64,000 nucleotides of DNA, from NCBI GenBank assembly GCA_038496445.1, contig JALMLS010000577.1:558001-622000 (forward strand). The letters are read 5' to 3'. The position numbers and the translations under genes were made by a program. Shown here one piece after another: positions 7,382 through 64,000 of this stretch. Every line of letters starts with the position of its first letter. The stretch's first letter is position 1. The notes under the pieces were generated by a model, which was not told the origin of the DNA, made no database searches, and saw only the letters and a program-made list of their open reading frames with translations. This stretch comes from Trichosphaerium sp. ATCC 40318. Taxonomy: Eukaryota > Protista > Tubulinea.

Positions 7382-8431
7382 TTATTTTTTGGTTGCCCAA
7401 TAGTATGATATCGTTGAGTAACATGTGGTTGTAAAGTACCTAAACCAAGCATATACTGTGATATGTAACATGTGAAAAGGGAACAACAAGGTGCTTAATG
7501 AACGTATCATTAAGCTGCTTCTTTTGTAGTTTCTGGCAGTACCACCAAAGTGGTTTTGCTTCTTTTTTCTTCTACTAAGCCATGCGTTGATTTTGTTTCC
7601 TTGGTTTTCTACTAGCCTACCATCCTTAGTCCACTGTTTCATTTCACCACTTTGTTTACCATCAAGCCATACAGATTGTTCCTGAAGTTGTCCGTTTTCA
7701 TACCATACTTTGGCTGTGCCACTTTTTTCGCCATCTATCCACATGCTTTGTGCGAAGAGTCTACCATTTTTAAACCATGCTTTGTATTCACCATGTTCCT
7801 TGTCATCAACAAACATGCACTGTGCTTTGAGCTGTCCATTTTCATACCAATTTTTGGTTTCACCATTTTTTTTACCATCAATGACTATGGCTTGCAGCTT
7901 AATTTGTCCATTTTCATACCACCTTTGGTGTAGTCCGCTTTGTTTACCATCAACCCATACAGATTGTTCCTTAAGTTGTCCGTTTTCATACCATACTTTG
8001 CTTGTGCCACTTTTTTCGCCATTAACCCGCATGCCTTGAGCTTGAAGTTTACCATTTTTAAACCATGCTTTGCCTTCACCATGTTGCTTGCCATCAACGA
8101 ACATGCACTGTACTTGGAGCTGTCCATTTTTATGCCACATTTGGCTAATGCCATTACCTTTGCCATCAGCTAATGTGTATTGAAACGAAAGTTGTCCATT
8201 CTCATACCATCCGTTGCATTGTCCATTTTTAGCATACTCATGAGCCATCACTCTTCCACTTTTATACCATCTGATCCATTTTCCTTTGCGCTGTAATGAT
8301 TTGTCAAAATGTGTGTTGATTGCTGCTTTCTTTGATAATGTATGGAATTTTGTGAATGCTTCTGAGTTGAATGTACAGATATATTGTTGAATTTCACGTG
8401 GGAGATCAAGTAAAGTCAAGGCAGAAGACAT
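7382..8431 (-). CDS. Intronless F-box-like + MORN-variant repeat protein
   Basis: N-term LLDLPREIQQYI (F-box-like); 24-aa repeats WYENGQL..Q...DGK..G..K; internal 288-bp higher-order duplication (7652 vs 7940). Confidence 0.85.
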   Translation of the reverse strand: MSSALTLLDLPREIQQYICTFNSEAFTKFHTLSKKAAINTHFDKSLQRKGKWIRWYKSGRVMAHEYAKNGQCNGWYENGQLSFQYTLADGKGNGISQMWHKNGQLQVQCMFVDGKQHGEGKAWFKNGKLQAQGMRVNGEKSGTSKVWYENGQLKEQSVWVDGKQSGLHQRWYENGQIKLQAIVIDGKKNGETKNWYENGQLKAQCMFVDDKEHGEYKAWFKNGRLFAQSMWIDGEKSGTAKVWYENGQLQEQSVWLDGKQSGEMKQWTKDGRLVENQGNKINAWLSRRKKKQNHFGGTARNYKRSSLMIRSLSTLLFPFHMLHITVYAWFRYFTTTCYSTISYYWATKK

Positions 8432-8967
8432 CTTATTGCTAACGAAAAAACTGAAAAAAGTAAGAATATGAGTAGTATTACAAGTATTTGTAGGTTCAAG
8501 CACATTTGAAAAGGTTTACAGAACAAAAATTTTGCCACCTACTTTTATTTGTTGCGTTGTGGCTAAAAATAAACGTAGGTGGTAGGTAGCGTGTTAAAAT
8601 CGCCCATCAGCGCTGTTTATGTTCGCTTTTGGCGTACCTTAAAGTTTACACAATATTATTAAAAATGTTGTTTAAAAACCGCTGAGACACGTTATTACCA
8701 AATGATAGTACTAATACGACAATGTTAGGAGAATTAACAGCAAAAACATAAAAAATCTAACGCTACGCACGTATTCAATTGTGGTTGTTTAGGAATAACG
8801 ATTTACTGCATGCTTCATGTGCTCTCTATCACGTATGCTATTCCAGGTGAAATTAGTAGACTCACAAAGACTATGTCGACTCATTTAAACAGGGACATTT
8901 TCTTTGTGAGATTTTATCTTTGTACACATTATTTTATTACCTTGAAAGTTGTGTCAAGGGTTTTTTT

Positions 8968-20876: not shown

Positions 20877-22076
20877 TCAGATGTCATATGTCACACGGGT
20901 TCCAATTAGCGCTTTAGCACCTTCTTCTGTTACAGAAGTGTTATCAGCTGAAACGTAACTTGCCCCTTTCAGTGCTTTAATGCCTTCATCTGTCACTAAA
21001 GTGCCATTGAGGTAAATGGTATGAACACCTGCAAGCGCTTTAATACCTTCATCTGTTACTGAAGTATGTATAAGATTTATAGTGTGAACTCCAGCGAGAG
21101 CCTTAATGCCTTCATCTGTTACTGAAGTGTCACGTAGGACGATATTATGAACTCCAGCGAGAGCCTTAATGCCTTTGTCTGTCACGGAAGTGCTACCAAG
21201 GTGTATGGTATGAACACCTTTAAGCGATTTGATGCCTTCATCTGTTATTGAAGTGCTATTGAGGTAAATAGTATGAACTCCAGCAAGTACTTTAATGGAT
21301 TCATCCGTCACTGAAGTGTTACAAAGACTAATTGTATGAACACCTTTGAGTGATTTAACACCTTCATCTGTAACTTTTGTGCTATCAAGATTAATATTAT
21401 GAACACCTTTGAGTGCTTTAACACCCTTGTCTGTAACACAAGTGCGCGATAGATTTATAGTATGTACACCAGCAAGCGCTTTAACACCTTCATCTGATAC
21501 TGATGTAAATATAAGACTTATAGTGTGAACTCCGGCAAGAGCCTTAATGCCTTCATCTGTAATAGAAGTGCTTCCAAGGTTTATAGTATGTACTCCAGCA
21601 AGTGCTTTAAAGCCTTCATCAGTCACATTTTCACAGGCATAAAGGTCAATTGTATGTACTCCTGCAAGCGCTTTAATGCCTTCACCTGTTACTGAACTAC
21701 TCATAAGGCTAATATAATGAACTCCTGCAAGCGCTTTAATGCCTTCATCTGTTACTGAAGTCTCATAAAGGGTAATGCTACGAACACCTGCAAGCTTTTT
21801 GATACTATTGTCATCAAAGCAACCATCAAGTACAATCTTAGTGTTTTTGAGAATGCCTTTGTGTTGTAGAAGTGATTCTACTTCCGATGAGGATTCAATG
21901 ACGATACTTCCGTAGCCAATAACATCACGCACGATAGATGCCATAAAATGGCAGGTCTGGCAAGCTGCAAATCGCGATTTGGTTGTTTGGCGTAAAATAT
22001 GCGCTATTATCTCTGTAGGTAGTCGTAATAAACTCACACTGGTGGTGTCGTTGATTGTAACGTCTGAGGAAAGCAT
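20877..22076 (-). CDS. Intronless F-box + leucine-rich-repeat protein
   Basis: LLRLPTEIIAHIL (F-box-like) followed by about 13-14 22-aa repeats ALAGVHTINL..TSVTDEGIK. Confidence 0.9.
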   Translation of the reverse strand: MLSSDVTINDTTSVSLLRLPTEIIAHILRQTTKSRFAACQTCHFMASIVRDVIGYGSIVIESSSEVESLLQHKGILKNTKIVLDGCFDDNSIKKLAGVRSITLYETSVTDEGIKALAGVHYISLMSSSVTGEGIKALAGVHTIDLYACENVTDEGFKALAGVHTINLGSTSITDEGIKALAGVHTISLIFTSVSDEGVKALAGVHTINLSRTCVTDKGVKALKGVHNINLDSTKVTDEGVKSLKGVHTISLCNTSVTDESIKVLAGVHTIYLNSTSITDEGIKSLKGVHTIHLGSTSVTDKGIKALAGVHNIVLRDTSVTDEGIKALAGVHTINLIHTSVTDEGIKALAGVHTIYLNGTLVTDEGIKALKGASYVSADNTSVTEEGAKALIGTRVTYDI

Positions 22077-30757: not shown

Positions 30758-32146
30758 ATGATAAAAGCTCTTCTATGTGTACTATGTCTTATAACAGTAG
30801 CAATGTCTCTAAGTACGTACGCTTTACGAAAAACAAAGTTCTTTTCTAAAAAACTCTAAAATGCAAGAAATTAAATACAATGTAGCTGCTGGCGATGAAG
30901 GTAACTGTGAGCTTGTGCTTAGCAGTACTGGGGCCAATTTGATAGAAAACTCTACAGAACCTAACAATCCAGACTTCTTTGTAACCACTGGTACCACGGA
31001 GTATATATTTGCAACATCAACGAACACGTACTCCCTTGACATTGAGCCAACAACATTCACTTTGTCTATCTTCGCAGACAGAAACGGAGCTCTATTTTCA
31101 AGTGACATGGTAATGACATGCGTAATGTTTCAACCAGTTGTAACAGGTACATTTCCTTCAAGGCATTTTTTTTGTAGAGCGCTCCAAAAATGGAAACTTT
31201 GTTCAGCTACTCATTGAGATTTCCACGCAGTAGATTTTGTTTAAAGTTGTTTGTAGGGTTTTTTTTGACGTCATCTGGTTTCATGAACCCTCCTACTAGC
31301 ATAAGCTACAATTCTACATTATTTACGTACGTCATTCCATCATTGAACGTTAGCATTAATTGTGTTTTTAGCTTTACACTGCCAACGCCAGTTCTTACCC
31401 CCAGACAGACAACATCTATCGAATTCTCATTTGCGCCACCCCCAACAACACTACCTCCAACAACACTACCTCCAACAACGCTGCCACCAACTACTCTACC
31501 TCCAACAACACTGCCTCCGACAACGTTGCCACCAACTACACTACCTCCAACTACGCTACCACCAACTACTCTACCTCCAACAACACTGCCTCCGACAACG
31601 TTGCCACCAACTACTCTACCTCCCACAACGTTACCACCAACTACTCTACCTCCAACTACGTTACCACCAACTACACTACCTCCAACAACGTTGCCACCAA
31701 CTACTCTACCTCCAACAACACTGCCTCCGACAACATTACCACCAACTACGTTACCACCAACTACACTAGCTCCAACAACTTTATCCCCAACAACCCTGCC
31801 TCCAACCAGTCTACCTCCAACAACTTTACCTCCGACGACTCTACCTCCAACAACGTTACCACCAACTACTCTACCTCCAACTGCGCAACAGCCAACGACA
31901 GCTACCCAACAGCCAACGACAGCAGCTCCAACAACAGTCCCACCAACTAGCCTCACTTCCACACCACCGCCACAAACAACGCTAGCACCTACTACAGTCC
32001 AACCTACTACAGTCGCGCCTACCTCCACCATTGTACAAACACCAACTGAAGCAGTACCTGTAGATGCAACGTCATTGAGGTCTTCAGGTAACACCCTTTA
32101 CATAGCTGGCATTCTATTGTGTAGTGTATTACTCGTTTCTTTATAG
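30758..32146 (+). CDS. Secreted/GPI-anchored mucin-like protein with PPTTL repeats, 3 exons
   Basis: Signal peptide MIKALLCVLCLITVAMSL; beta-rich domain; Pro/Thr stalk; C-terminal SSG+hydrophobic tail LYIAGILLCSVLLVSL. Confidence 0.85.
31437..31880 (+). repeat. Coding 15-bp tandem repeat (PPTTL), about 29 units
   Basis: Units such as ccaccaactactcta / cctccaacaacgttg vary mostly at synonymous positions. Confidence 0.95.
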
Positions 32147-59929: not shown

Positions 59930-62900
59930 ATGCGGCAACTCCTTGCGCTTTGCATTATTTTATTGGTTTATCATTTACATGCCAGAGGTAGAGCCACCGG
60001 AGATAAATAACACGAGCAACTAATAAAGCCTTTACAGAGTACAGAAATATTACAGGACGCGACACGCAACGCGCTTCTTTAAACGGGAGACATATTGGAG
60101 AAGTTCATTCATCTTTTATTAACAATCTCAATCTACCTCTGTATGCTGATGGTATATACGAACCATCTGGACAAAACCAGAAATCAGCACGAGAAATAAG
60201 GTCATTTTCGTAAAAACTCACCACTTACTAACGCCGTAAAGTAATCGTTTGGCAGAGATACCATCAGCAGGTCCTAACGAGAACTTTGTTAACTTGCTTC
60301 ATTTGTTTTGGGGAGAAGCTATTAACCATGACATGGATGAGACTCCTCAAACGTCAACACAGCCTCTAGCCATTAAGGTGCCTTCTTGTGATAGATTTTT
60401 CGGAGCACCTTCACACTCACCTTCTACTGGTTTCTATACAGGCGTAGCTAAGGCAAGTATCAATGAAAACGAAGTTTATCGGGTAGTTTCGTAAGAAAAA
60501 AAAAACCTAATTGCCGAAATTAGACGTATATTGGCGGTTGCAACAGTACCTCTGCAGATTTGATAGAAGCACCTACTGGATGTACAGGATTCCAAGCTAG
60601 TATAGCTTTTCAAAGGTCTAAAATTGCTGTGGGTACGTTTTAAACTGTAATCTTTTTTCTGCTGTTGTTTTTTTGAAGTTTTCCGAAAACAGGCGCTAAA
60701 AATAAAGTAAATAGGAACTGGAACTTCTACCCCAAGACTGCCTCCAAATGAAGTATCACATTACCTCGATTTATCTTGGATGTATGGATCAACTGAAACA
60801 CCTTCTTCTGTTAGTGGGTGCAAGTTTGAATTCACAACTTATGAGTAAGTTTGCCGCATTCCTTCATCTGTCACAGTGTTCATTGATGATCTCTTTAGAG
60901 AACCTGTATCTCGTGCACGTCTTCAAGGATGGTTTAGAGTTACTGGCGATGTGAGAATTAACCAAGTAAGAAAAATTTAAGAGAAGAGATCTTCGTACTA
61001 AACGAAGTTGCTTAGAACCCTTTGGCTTACGCTATTCATGAAATTTTCATACGTGAGCATAATAGACTTTGCGATGAGTATTTCGAATCAAATCCAGATT
61101 GGACTGATGAAGTACGATACCAAGAAGTACGCCGTATGGTTATTGCTATGTGGCAGAAGATATCATCACGAGAGTACTTGTCAGCTTTGCTAGGTACTTA
61201 ATTCGAAGTGATGGTACTTTTATTGACAGTGCTATTTAAAGGTGAACCATTACCGCCATACACTGGCTATAATTCTTCTGTTGATCCACGTGTCGATGTT
61301 TTCTTTGCCACAGTTGCTTTCAGATACGGGCACGCTGCAATGCGGAGTCAACTTGAACGAGTTGACAACAACAATGATGAGATACCGGAAGGACATATTT
61401 TACTCCGAGACGTTTTCTGGAAGCCTGGCCAGTTCTTACACAAACTACAAAGCAGCGAGCATGATATGATTGCTTCCTATTTAAGGTACACTTTGGGCTA
61501 TTTTATGTTTAACTCACCGCCGTTCTAGAGGCTCCGCTAATCAAAGGGAGGGCAGTGTATGGCGCAATCAATTATTTCCAGTATAGATTGTTAACAAGGT
61601 TGGTAGGTTGGGCCAAAACTGGTGGACGATTTGAGGAATTTTCTCTTTTTAGATGATAAGAACGGTCTAGATCTGTTATCTATTGATATTCAAAGAGGAA
61701 GAGATCACGGCATGCCACCTTACAATTCTGTAAGGCAACGCTTAGGATTAGCACCAGTATCTTCTTTCTCAGAGATATCGAGCATGCCGGAGATTGTATC
61801 GGCACTACAAGAGCTATACGCAACTGTTGATGATATTGACGTGTGGGTTGGATGTGTTTGTGAAGGTACAAAGTTCATTATACGGTTACCGGGATAACAT
61901 ACCTTCTAGATCATATTCAAGGAGCGAGCGTTGGAGAGACTTTCCATGCTGGTATTATAGAACAGTTTCTTCGCACAAGAGATGGAGATAGGTAAGTGGT
62001 TTTTTTCTATGTCCACTTTCTCAAACTGTACTAGGTTCTGGTATGAGAATCCGGATCAATTCACGACTGAAGAGATTAATACTATCTACGGAACAACATT
62101 ACATGATCTTGTTACACGTAACTTTGATGTGAGTACAGAAGCATTCCCGTTATCTGGCTTCTTTACACTCAACAGACAGCTTGAAAACCTAGGTACCTGT
62201 CTTCCGAAACTACATATCAATCTAACAAAGTTATGTAGCTTCTACAACCTTCTTTGAAGAGTTTCCTTCAAGTTTCGATGAAGTGATTGACTTGTCTTCG
62301 TTGTATAGACTTGCATACAGGTAAGCTTGCTCGGAATCATAAATTCATTCTTATTTTTTTCTTTCTAAAGGATTGATGAGAATGAGTACGAACTTGAGAT
62401 AATGCTTCAAACGAAAACGACCGGATGGGTTGGTATTGGTTTAGAACCATACGAAAACACAATGAAGGATGCAGGTACAAGATAAAAGTCAAAAAATGTA
62501 TATTCACGTCTACTACTTGTAGATATTATTTTATGTCGCACCCTCGAGAACGGTACAGGAATATGCGATGATAGATATGCTGTTGATGTTGGAATACCAA
62601 CACTTGATACAGGTAAGAGTCCTAGTGCCATGTAACACTTATATGTTGTTAGATCTTGGCGGATCAAATGATATTGTTATGATTTCTGGAAAAGTGGAGA
62701 AAGGAAGATCGTACGTTTTGACAGTATTTGCTTGGAGTGTGTTTTACTTACAACGAATATTGTAGTTTGTACAGGTTTATAAGACCATTAAAAGCCACAG
62801 ATGATAAACTAGATAAGTCAATAGATCCACGAGATATGAAAGTTATTTTTGCTTTTCACCCGACATCTTCTGATCTAAAATATCATGGACCGTCAAGGTC

Positions 62901-64000
62901 AAGTTCTATAATGATTAACTTCCACGAAGGCAAGTAAAATCATTCCTAATAATTCAGTCACCAAAACCTTCTTGAGATTTTGTGTAGTACTGTAAAACAT
63001 GCAAGTATCTAACTTCTTTTTTTAGTTCTACTTTTAGATAAGGTTTCCCCTGCTATTGTATGGACTTCTGTAGTAGTAGCATCAGCAGGCGTTTTGCTAT
63101 GTATTTTCATCGCAATAACTATGGCTCTGTTTCCTAAATACTTTCACTACCAAGATCTCGTACGCGCTTTGTAAACAGAACCCTGTTTTTTTCCTTATTT
63201 TTTTGAACTAGGTCTTTTGTTCTATTATATTGATTGGCGTGGTTTTTGCCATGATGACTACTTTTATTGAACTTCCAGATCAATCTGAACTAACGTGCAC
63301 GATAATAACATGGTTTTTGGGATACGCCTTCGTTTGTGTCTTTGGGTACGATACTTTCCTTGTTGCCTTGTTTTCTGCTTCGCATTTTATTCTCACGTCA
63401 CATAGTTCTTTATTTGGACGTACATGGAGGATATGGCGTATAGTAAGCGGAGGAAAAAAAATCAAAGTAGTCAGGGTAACCAGGCTAGATGTTTTACAGG
63501 TACAATCATTCAACTATTTACGTAAGCTTGTTAAAAAACCAACTTTGTTCTTAGGTTATTGGAGCATTATTTGTTTTTGAGAGCATTTTCCTTATAATAT
63601 GGACCATAGTCGACCGTCCCACACCCACAAGAAGTACGATTAACTAGTTTTTATCACGTACAATGACCTCTCTGATAAAATATTTAGCTGGTAGTAAATC
63701 TATATGCATGAGTAGGTCTCTATGGTGGTGGGGATTTTTTACATTATATAAAGTCTTGTTTCTATTTATTGGAGTTGGCCTTGTACGCACCTCCCTCTTT
63801 TTGAGTTTCTAATGAATCTAATGATATAATATTAGGGTATTAAGACTAGGAAGTATGCCAAGGAATTCAATGACTCAAAGGAGATTGGATACTGTATTTT
63901 TGTTATCACGTTTACAATTATGATTGTTGGTCCTATTGGGTTTTTCCTTCGTGATATCATCTTTGCAGTATATTTGTGCTTATCACTAGGTACTAGCACT
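59930..64000 (+). CDS. Heme peroxidase + DOMON + class C GPCR 7TM fusion protein, truncated by window end
   Basis: Signal peptide; FWGEAINHDM, GDVRINQN, REHNRLC, FRYGH, IQRGRDHG; DOMON GWVGIG..TMKDADII..YHG; 7TM SLFGRTWRI, YKVLFLFIGVGL, KTRKYAKEFNDSKEIG. Confidence 0.9.

Follow-up and report, generated by a model that had tools for sequence, protein, structure and literature searches.

The extracellular parts of class C G-protein-coupled receptors (GPCRs) show diversity outside the animals, where seven-transmembrane (7TM) domains of the glutamate family recruit species-specific N-terminal domains (PMC3971589) and where choanoflagellate receptors carry ectodomains derived from enzymes, for example a 5'-nucleotidase (PMC12716839). 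Ectodomains other than the Venus flytrap comprise Cache with EGF in GPR158 and GPR179, as well as 5_nucleotid_C, Ephrin_rec-like, OpuAC and Bmp in non-metazoan receptors (PMC12716839, PMC3971589). That class C receptors of non-metazoans exchange their ectodomains is, in general terms, already documented, and the main texts of these two papers, at least, mention neither peroxidase nor DOMON. Here we describe a gene at the end of a 64,000-nucleotide stretch of Trichosphaerium sp. ATCC 40318 (contig JALMLS010000577.1, positions 558,001 to 622,000 of the forward strand; hereafter the window), in which a signal peptide, a domain of the peroxidase-cyclooxygenase family (An_peroxidase), a DOMON domain and a class C 7TM domain follow each other in one reading frame.

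The gene is intact, expressed and selectively constrained, and its architecture is undescribed within the literature and sequence searches made. Full-text searches returned neither a combination of 7tm_3 with An_peroxidase nor a peroxidase-bearing GPCR, and the single paper with both 7tm_3 and DOMON was unrelated, congruent with an earlier note on this DNA that had proposed the fusion, without a flytrap, and had held it to be uncharacterised. The remark in that note that class C receptors normally carry a flytrap needs softening, considering the species-specific diversity of non-metazoan ectodomains (PMC3971589, PMC12716839). As to function, we place a probability of about 0.45 on the ectodomain being a heme-based sensor for the receptor, as judged from its sequence, and not a halide-oxidising enzyme.

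Gene structure and domain composition

The three forward frames were cut into open segments, frame-preserving GT/GC-AG joins were enumerated and short canonical joins were picked. The resulting model comprises 23 exons on the plus strand, running from an ATG at 59930, five codons downstream of an in-frame stop, to the window end at 64000, with a reading frame that stays open for 962 residues. Built independently, it bears out the phase-compatible exon chain of the earlier note, together with the extents given there for the peroxidase (about 60040-62190) and DOMON (about 62240-62929) parts and all of the quoted motifs, namely TMKDAD (spliced across an intron), YHG, GRTWRI, LYKVLF, FNDSK and the cysteine of the third transmembrane helix (TM3; Table 1). 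The 22 introns measure 40-96 nt (median 50), 20 of them being GT-AG and two GC-AG.

Pfam profiles of all three families were scanned exon by exon. Seven exons match An_peroxidase (PF03098) collinearly, from profile position 65 to 523 of 530, with best E-values of 3.6e-27, 1.3e-18 and 5.6e-11, and three of them alone pass the 25-bit cut-off (95.6, 67.3 and 42.1 bits). DOMON (PF03351) is matched by exon 14 (profile 11-45, 20.9 bits, E 4e-4) and exon 17 (profile 95-124, 12.1 bits, E 0.24), again collinearly and each below the cut-off, with a rough sum of 33 bits against 32.7, and no other family matched exons 13-17 in the exon-level scan. Analogously, three exons match 7tm_3 (PF00003) in collinear order, exons 19-20 at profile 45-88 and over one further stretch (19.7 bits, E from 7e-4 to 0.05) and exon 23 at profile 185-223 (22.3 bits, E 1.2e-4); singly, the scores stay under the 33.5-bit cut-off for whole proteins, which their sum exceeds. 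The three profiles that the earlier note had expected on one chain are hence recovered in order, as matches of single exons. No ectodomain exon matched ANF_receptor, the Venus flytrap family, in the Pfam scan; An_peroxidase and DOMON together explain the entire ectodomain.

Neighbour searches gave a similar picture. The language-model neighbours of exon 17 are families of the DOMON clan (DOMON together with CDH-cyt, EB_dh and AIR12, which are heme-binding types), and 62 of 100 Atlas feature neighbours of exon 23 are 7tm_3 clusters, with a top score of 0.92.

Transcription and integrity of the chain

Contigs from two public RNA runs, which cover the gene thinly and to about one third, contain spliced joints coinciding with seven of the 22 modelled introns, three in the peroxidase and four in the 7TM part (Table 1). 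The model is thereby borne out for both of these parts, in which the gene is transcribed and spliced accordingly. All seven differences between RNA and genome, spread over six codons at peroxidase residues 345, 517, 531 and 532 and at 7TM residues 802 and 861, are synonymous, which supports the reading frame as well as purifying selection at both ends of the gene.

Both GC-AG introns share the context aag/GCAAGT, and one of the two is confirmed by RNA; the GC donor type, found also at the border between DOMON and the first transmembrane helix (TM1), is a real feature of the organism. Three GT donors considered for intron 3, at 60474, 60483 and 60491, were dropped, the RNA contig using the GC donor at 60453. 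Regarding the splice signals at large, 12 of the 22 donors start with GTAC, 18 of the 22 acceptors are TAG and CTAAC-like branch sites are often found 10-16 nt before the acceptor (introns 59988-63835), an unusual style that may aid placement of the organism or training of gene finders. Intron 19 is 60 nt long, in frame and stop-free, such that its retention would add 20 residues to TM3; it is spliced out in the RNA contig.

It is highly probable that peroxidase, DOMON and 7TM domain are part of a single chain, a conclusion drawn from the gene structure, because the gaps between the modules are small, the splice signals at the boundaries are normal and neither DOMON nor the 7TM domain has a start of its own. 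The two gaps amount to just 46 and 96 nt, too small for promoters, and both boundary introns display a donor, a CTAAC branch site and a TAG acceptor resembling those of confirmed introns. Specifically, intron 12 has the GTAC, CTAAC and TAG style of the RNA-confirmed introns, while the donor context of intron 17 is identical to that of confirmed intron 3 and its branch site sits 13 nt from the acceptor, with a possible alternative in-phase acceptor 12 nt downstream. The DOMON exons possess neither start codon nor signal peptide, and the sole methionine near the TM1 exon sits within TM1, so that an independent 7TM gene would lack a usable ATG. Furthermore, the introns after the signal peptide, the peroxidase and the DOMON domain (introns 1, 12 and 17) are all of phase 1, the classic signature of shuffled modules, and for this reason the modules were probably joined by exon shuffling.

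The fusion could instead be an artefact of the gene model, or the locus could yield separate isoforms, a secreted peroxidase (with or without DOMON) and a separate 7TM protein, the full fusion being rare or absent. Such a scenario draws on the RNA contigs leaving 62229-63050 uncovered, with none over the DOMON exons or over introns 12 and 17, and on the stops that retention of intron 12 (at about 62255) or intron 17 (at about 62935) would bring, hence secreted forms, which are possible products of the gene. One contig of run X2 moreover reaches 17 nt into intron 11 (62018-62034), which points to unspliced precursor or to DNA in the RNA library and may likewise be counted in favour of this explanation. 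Nevertheless, we regard it as very unlikely, considering the in-phase canonical signals of the two short gaps, comparable to those of the seven confirmed introns, and the missing starts for the downstream modules; the RNA coverage is fragmentary throughout, so the hole is uninformative.

The membrane domain

By hydropathy, residue 738 is followed by six helices and the first part of a seventh, the ectodomain having no hydrophobic helix, and the DOMON domain ends only some nine residues above TM1. A pair of cysteines, Cys802 at the upper end of TM3 and Cys882 in the second extracellular loop (ECL2), is of the type that forms the TM3-ECL2 disulfide. Three further motifs, GRTWRI at TM3 and the second intracellular loop, W..VD.P in TM4 and TR...FNDSK.IG at the third intracellular loop and TM6, resemble those of GABA-B sequences.

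The class C assignment of the earlier note also holds against a reading as cytochrome b561. Cytochrom_B561 gave no match at E <=10, and the lone histidine of the transmembrane region, H769, lies in a loop, whereas b561 would need four conserved histidines in the helices. Besides 7tm_3, the transmembrane exons gave just one match at E <=10, to DUF6704 on the TM1 exon and at chance level (E 0.33). Searches of the PDB with such short exons were uninformative: a GABA-B1 chain was the only receptor match, and a weak one (E about 1), and the matches of exon 23 to PPR proteins were discarded as repeat artefacts.

The heme pocket and the DOMON domain

Among solved chains, 8s6c_A (E 5e-27) and 6erc_A, Dictyostelium peroxinectin A (E 3e-22), come closest to the peroxidase exon of highest conservation. 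To census the pocket, the domain was aligned to 74 homologous domains from the protein-library matches, with residue roles as established for myeloperoxidase (MPO) and lactoperoxidase (LPO). The distal His103, Arg243 and the proximal His336 are retained, as is the Ca2+ site formed by Asp104, Ser195, Asp199 and Ser201, whose aligned residues are conserved in 65-74 of the 74 relatives (at the Ser195 column, Thr in 65 and Ser in nine).

Four pocket positions, on the other hand, depart from nearly all relatives (Table 1). In MPO numbering, E99 corresponds to the distal Gln91, N102 to the ester-forming Asp94, Q246 to the ester-forming Glu242 and D423 to Asn421, the partner of the proximal histidine. 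The codons of E99, N102 and H103 are unchanged in an RNA contig. Instead of the ester-forming aspartate and glutamate of a covalently bound heme, the protein has Asn102 and Gln246, and as both carboxylates are gone the heme would be non-covalent. Judging from the alignment, both covalent links appear abolished through isosteric swaps, while the residues for binding heme and splitting H2O2 stay.

The domain is divergent as a whole, departing at 15 of 83 near-invariant columns (median of the relatives, two) and sharing 36% identity with relatives that are 46% identical among themselves. It also contains a 34-residue insertion with two cysteines (about 60410-60600, residues ~131-170), without counterpart in the aligned relatives shown; an RNA contig reads through the splice junction of this insertion and through its middle (to 60590), and downstream of it a loop (residues ~205-232) is shorter than in the relatives.

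This divergence would suit a peroxidase that has become a pseudo-enzyme, a binding module without peroxide turnover through which the receptor senses an ordinary ligand: a lipid hydroperoxide or oxylipin, in the manner of the cyclooxygenases and dioxygenases of the non-covalent-heme branch, or an adhesion partner, in the manner of peroxinectin, with the DOMON domain binding sugars or small molecules. The altered columns, the cysteine-containing insertion and the shortened loop are in line with it, as is the loss of both covalent links, which recalls the cyclooxygenase and alpha-dioxygenase branch, itself only weakly matched by this protein. Yet all residues for holding heme and splitting H2O2 are kept, unexpected after a long phase of pure binding, and the changes are conservative and isosteric (D to N, E to Q) and do not look like decay. 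We consequently deem a pure binding module improbable.

Ligands of DOMON domains are heme or sugars (PMC4846438, PMC10784544). For HYP1, a CYBDOM protein, the b-heme of the DOMON domain is assigned to a conserved pair, Met90 and His174 (PMC10784544), and the heme-less DOMON domain of dopamine beta-hydroxylase (DBH) is without such Met/His ligands (PMC4846438). In the present protein the sequence looks like that of a full DOMON domain, with Met621 within a GW.GIG...M.DAD strand and His714 within YHG, 93 residues apart, plausibly matching the heme-type pattern at the level of motif and spacing. PDB searches with the short DOMON exons gave no matches. The two heme modules envisaged in the earlier note are plausible as a proposal. 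The peroxidase keeps the catalytic His and Arg, the proximal His and the Ca2+ site, lacks the two ester carboxylates and shows swaps at four near-invariant pocket positions, and the Met621/His714 pair would fit by motif and spacing.

Relatives

With exon 10, the most conserved of the peroxidase, 1.84 billion representative proteins were searched, giving 4198 matches. The best 150 of these are at most 62% identical to the query exon, and none of the same 150 aligns with the DOMON or 7TM part. The long relatives that were scanned are multidomain peroxidases of bacterial type or tandem double peroxidases. As an aside, several library proteins of 1044-1589 residues (P0001-P0005 and P0008) consist, as far as Pfam domains go, of two complete An_peroxidase copies in a row; they owe their top rank only to the summed scores of the two domains.

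A metagenome scan with the peroxidase exon found 80 loci, none with coding sequence for a DOMON or 7TM domain within 10 kb. A metagenome scan with the TM5-TM7 exon returned nothing, single-sequence scans finding only near-identical relatives, and the TM2-TM3 stretch, used as query in a word-indexed search of proteins, gave an equally empty result, exon-length queries seeing only short proteins. Paralogues of the receptor gene are absent from the 64-kb window. With no relative of the same architecture found, conservation cannot support function.

The peroxidase relatives are commonly fused to beta-helix, NPCBM, CBM and dockerin modules, and these partners, which do not signal, bring forward the possibility of a membrane-anchored enzyme. 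On that account the protein would be a cell-surface peroxidase, for instance for cross-linking of matrix or cyst wall or for detoxification of peroxide, in which the DOMON domain supplies electrons or binds cell-surface carbohydrate and the 7TM domain is an anchor, a dimerisation scaffold or a regulator from inside. The intact catalytic His-Arg pair, proximal histidine and Ca site agree with this, the ability of DOMON domains to bind heme or sugars is compatible (PMC4846438, PMC10784544), and DUOX sets a precedent for a peroxidase-type ectodomain on a polytopic membrane protein. A class C seven-helix domain would however be a costly anchor, and the motifs of its signalling face are kept (the basic residue of GRTWRI at TM3, FNDSK before TM6 and the TM3-ECL2 cysteine pair), with only synonymous variants in the 7TM part. 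Moreover, the ester-link carboxylates that are near-invariant in active relatives are gone and the distal Gln is replaced. Taken together, an anchored enzyme appears rather unlikely.

Possible function

How extracellular peroxide and redox state are perceived is only partly understood, and to our knowledge the GPCRs characterised so far do not include one with a heme-enzyme ectodomain. Returning to the heme-based sensor that we favour, sensing of peroxide or redox state by the receptor is plausible on the following grounds. The peroxidase, which keeps the His-Arg pair for reaction with H2O2 and the proximal histidine, would hold its heme non-covalently, and the state of this heme could be altered when the domain reacts with peroxide or takes up a peroxidase substrate or donor. 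Electron transfer could then alter a b-heme held by Met621 and His714 of the DOMON domain. Placed between the peroxidase and TM1 on a stalk of some nine residues, the DOMON domain might relay the redox or conformational change to the 7TM domain; because it sits directly on that domain, the change would be passed to the receptor. The latter, probably a dimer like other class C receptors, would finally act on a heterotrimeric G protein. The complete sequence of events, extracellular H2O2 or redox state being read by the peroxidase heme and conveyed through the DOMON b-heme into G-protein signalling, we consider doubtful as a whole. The coupling of peroxide or redox state to G proteins that the earlier note put forward is likewise a hypothesis.

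Several observations weigh against the proposed sensor. An inactive enzyme would explain the four swaps in the pocket just as well. The DOMON and 7tm_3 scores are at exon level, each individually under the Pfam whole-protein cut-off, and the RNA gap falls on the DOMON exons and the introns that join the modules. The window ends inside TM7, leaving the final half-helix as well as the cytoplasmic tail outside. Finally, neither orthologue nor paralogue of the same architecture was found in the library, metagenome and window searches, weak evidence in itself, these searches being insensitive at exon length.

If true, the complete scheme would make this the first heme-based GPCR, and with it a class of cell-surface receptors for reactive oxygen species; provided that the protein signals, it would form a direct link between reactive-oxygen chemistry and G proteins. 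With both ester links lost by isosteric change and the catalytic residues kept, the peroxidase would clearly exemplify an enzyme retuned into a sensor. Even as a tethered enzyme, the protein would illustrate how readily, in a genome outside the metazoans, phase-1 exon shuffling equips the class C module with foreign ectodomains.

Coordinates and other features of the window

Positions of the features discussed are compiled in Table 1. Elsewhere in the window, three long single-exon open reading frames are present, at 20877-22076 (minus strand), 7382-8503 (minus) and 31190-32146 (plus); their identities are an F-box/LRR protein (398 residues), a MORN-repeat protein and a proline-rich extensin-like frame. 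The F-box protein has no exact counterpart among the products of the public contig collection, and four frames of the window looked up there as exact products gave no match.

Table 1. Features of the peroxidase-DOMON-7TM gene, in window coordinates (position 1 is the first letter of the window).
Feature	Position	Strand	Remarks
Exon 1, with start codon and hydrophobic signal peptide (19 residues)	59930-59987	+	phase-1 intron after
Intron 1, border of signal peptide and peroxidase	59988-60037	+	GT-AG, phase 1
Exons 2-12, complete An_peroxidase (peroxidase-cyclooxygenase) domain	60038-62192	+	residues ~21-562
Intron 12, border of peroxidase and linker-DOMON	62193-62238	+	46 nt, GT-AG, phase 1
Exons 13-17, linker and DOMON domain	62239-62929	+	residues ~563-728
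Intron 17, border of DOMON and TM1 exon	62930-63025	+	96 nt, GC-AG, phase 1
Exons 18-23, ~9-residue stalk, TM1-TM6 and start of TM7	63026-64000	+	GABA-B-like class C 7TM
RNA-confirmed introns 3, 4 and 7 (peroxidase part)	60453-60523, 60633-60714, 61194-61241	+	intron 3 GC-AG
RNA-confirmed introns 18-21 (7TM part)	63160-63211, 63346-63405, 63500-63554, 63634-63687	+	
E99	60315-60317	+	Q in 72/74 relatives
N102	60324-60326	+	D in 69/74 relatives
Distal His103	60327-60329	+	retained
Arg243	60954-60956	+	retained
Q246	60963-60965	+	E in 70/74 relatives
Proximal His336	61331-61333	+	retained
D423	61685-61687	+	N in 69/74 relatives
TMKDAD	62459-62524	+	spliced across intron
Met621	62462-62464	+	
YHG	62881-62889	+	
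His714	62884-62886	+	
TM3 Cys in ELTCTI	63287-63304	+	
GRTWRI	63416-63433	+	
LYKVLF	63744-63761	+	
FNDSK	63866-63880	+	

Comparison with known systems

Peroxinectin A (6ERC) and 8S6C, secreted peroxidases of the family-6 type, share with the peroxidase domain the fold, the heme histidines, the Arg and the Ca site. They are soluble enzymes, whereas the peroxidase described here is tethered to a receptor, with N and Q in place of the ester-forming D and E, and E and D in place of the distal Gln and the proximal-side Asn. DUOX1/2 resemble it in overall layout, an An_peroxidase-type extracellular N-terminus being mounted on a polytopic membrane protein, and DUOX1 chains match the peroxidase query weakly (E 2e-4). 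The DUOX membrane part is however an electron-transfer module of the NADPH-oxidase type and not a GPCR-type domain, and unlike DUOX the present protein keeps both heme histidines.

Analogously, CYBDOM or SDR2-type proteins such as Arabidopsis HYP1 have an extracellular Met/His DOMON domain directly on a multi-helix membrane domain, as here (PMC10784544), with a similar spacing between Met and His (84 residues in HYP1, 93 here). In contrast to CYBDOM, the membrane domain is of the 7tm_3 type with a single histidine, so the DOMON domain would lack a heme wire through the membrane that could feed it.

With GABA-B and other class C GPCRs, including Dictyostelium Grl, the protein has in common the 7tm_3 match and a large ectodomain behind a signal peptide. 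Like GABA-B, it has a short stalk leading straight to TM1 without a cysteine-rich domain, and the TM3 and ECL2 cysteines are common to both; the Venus flytrap of GABA-B and mGluR is replaced by peroxidase and DOMON. The ectodomains described for class C receptors that lack a flytrap comprise no heme protein, as far as the main texts cited at the outset extend, and the principle is nonetheless the same, a 7tm_3 domain accepting unrelated, even enzyme-derived and often species-specific ectodomains.

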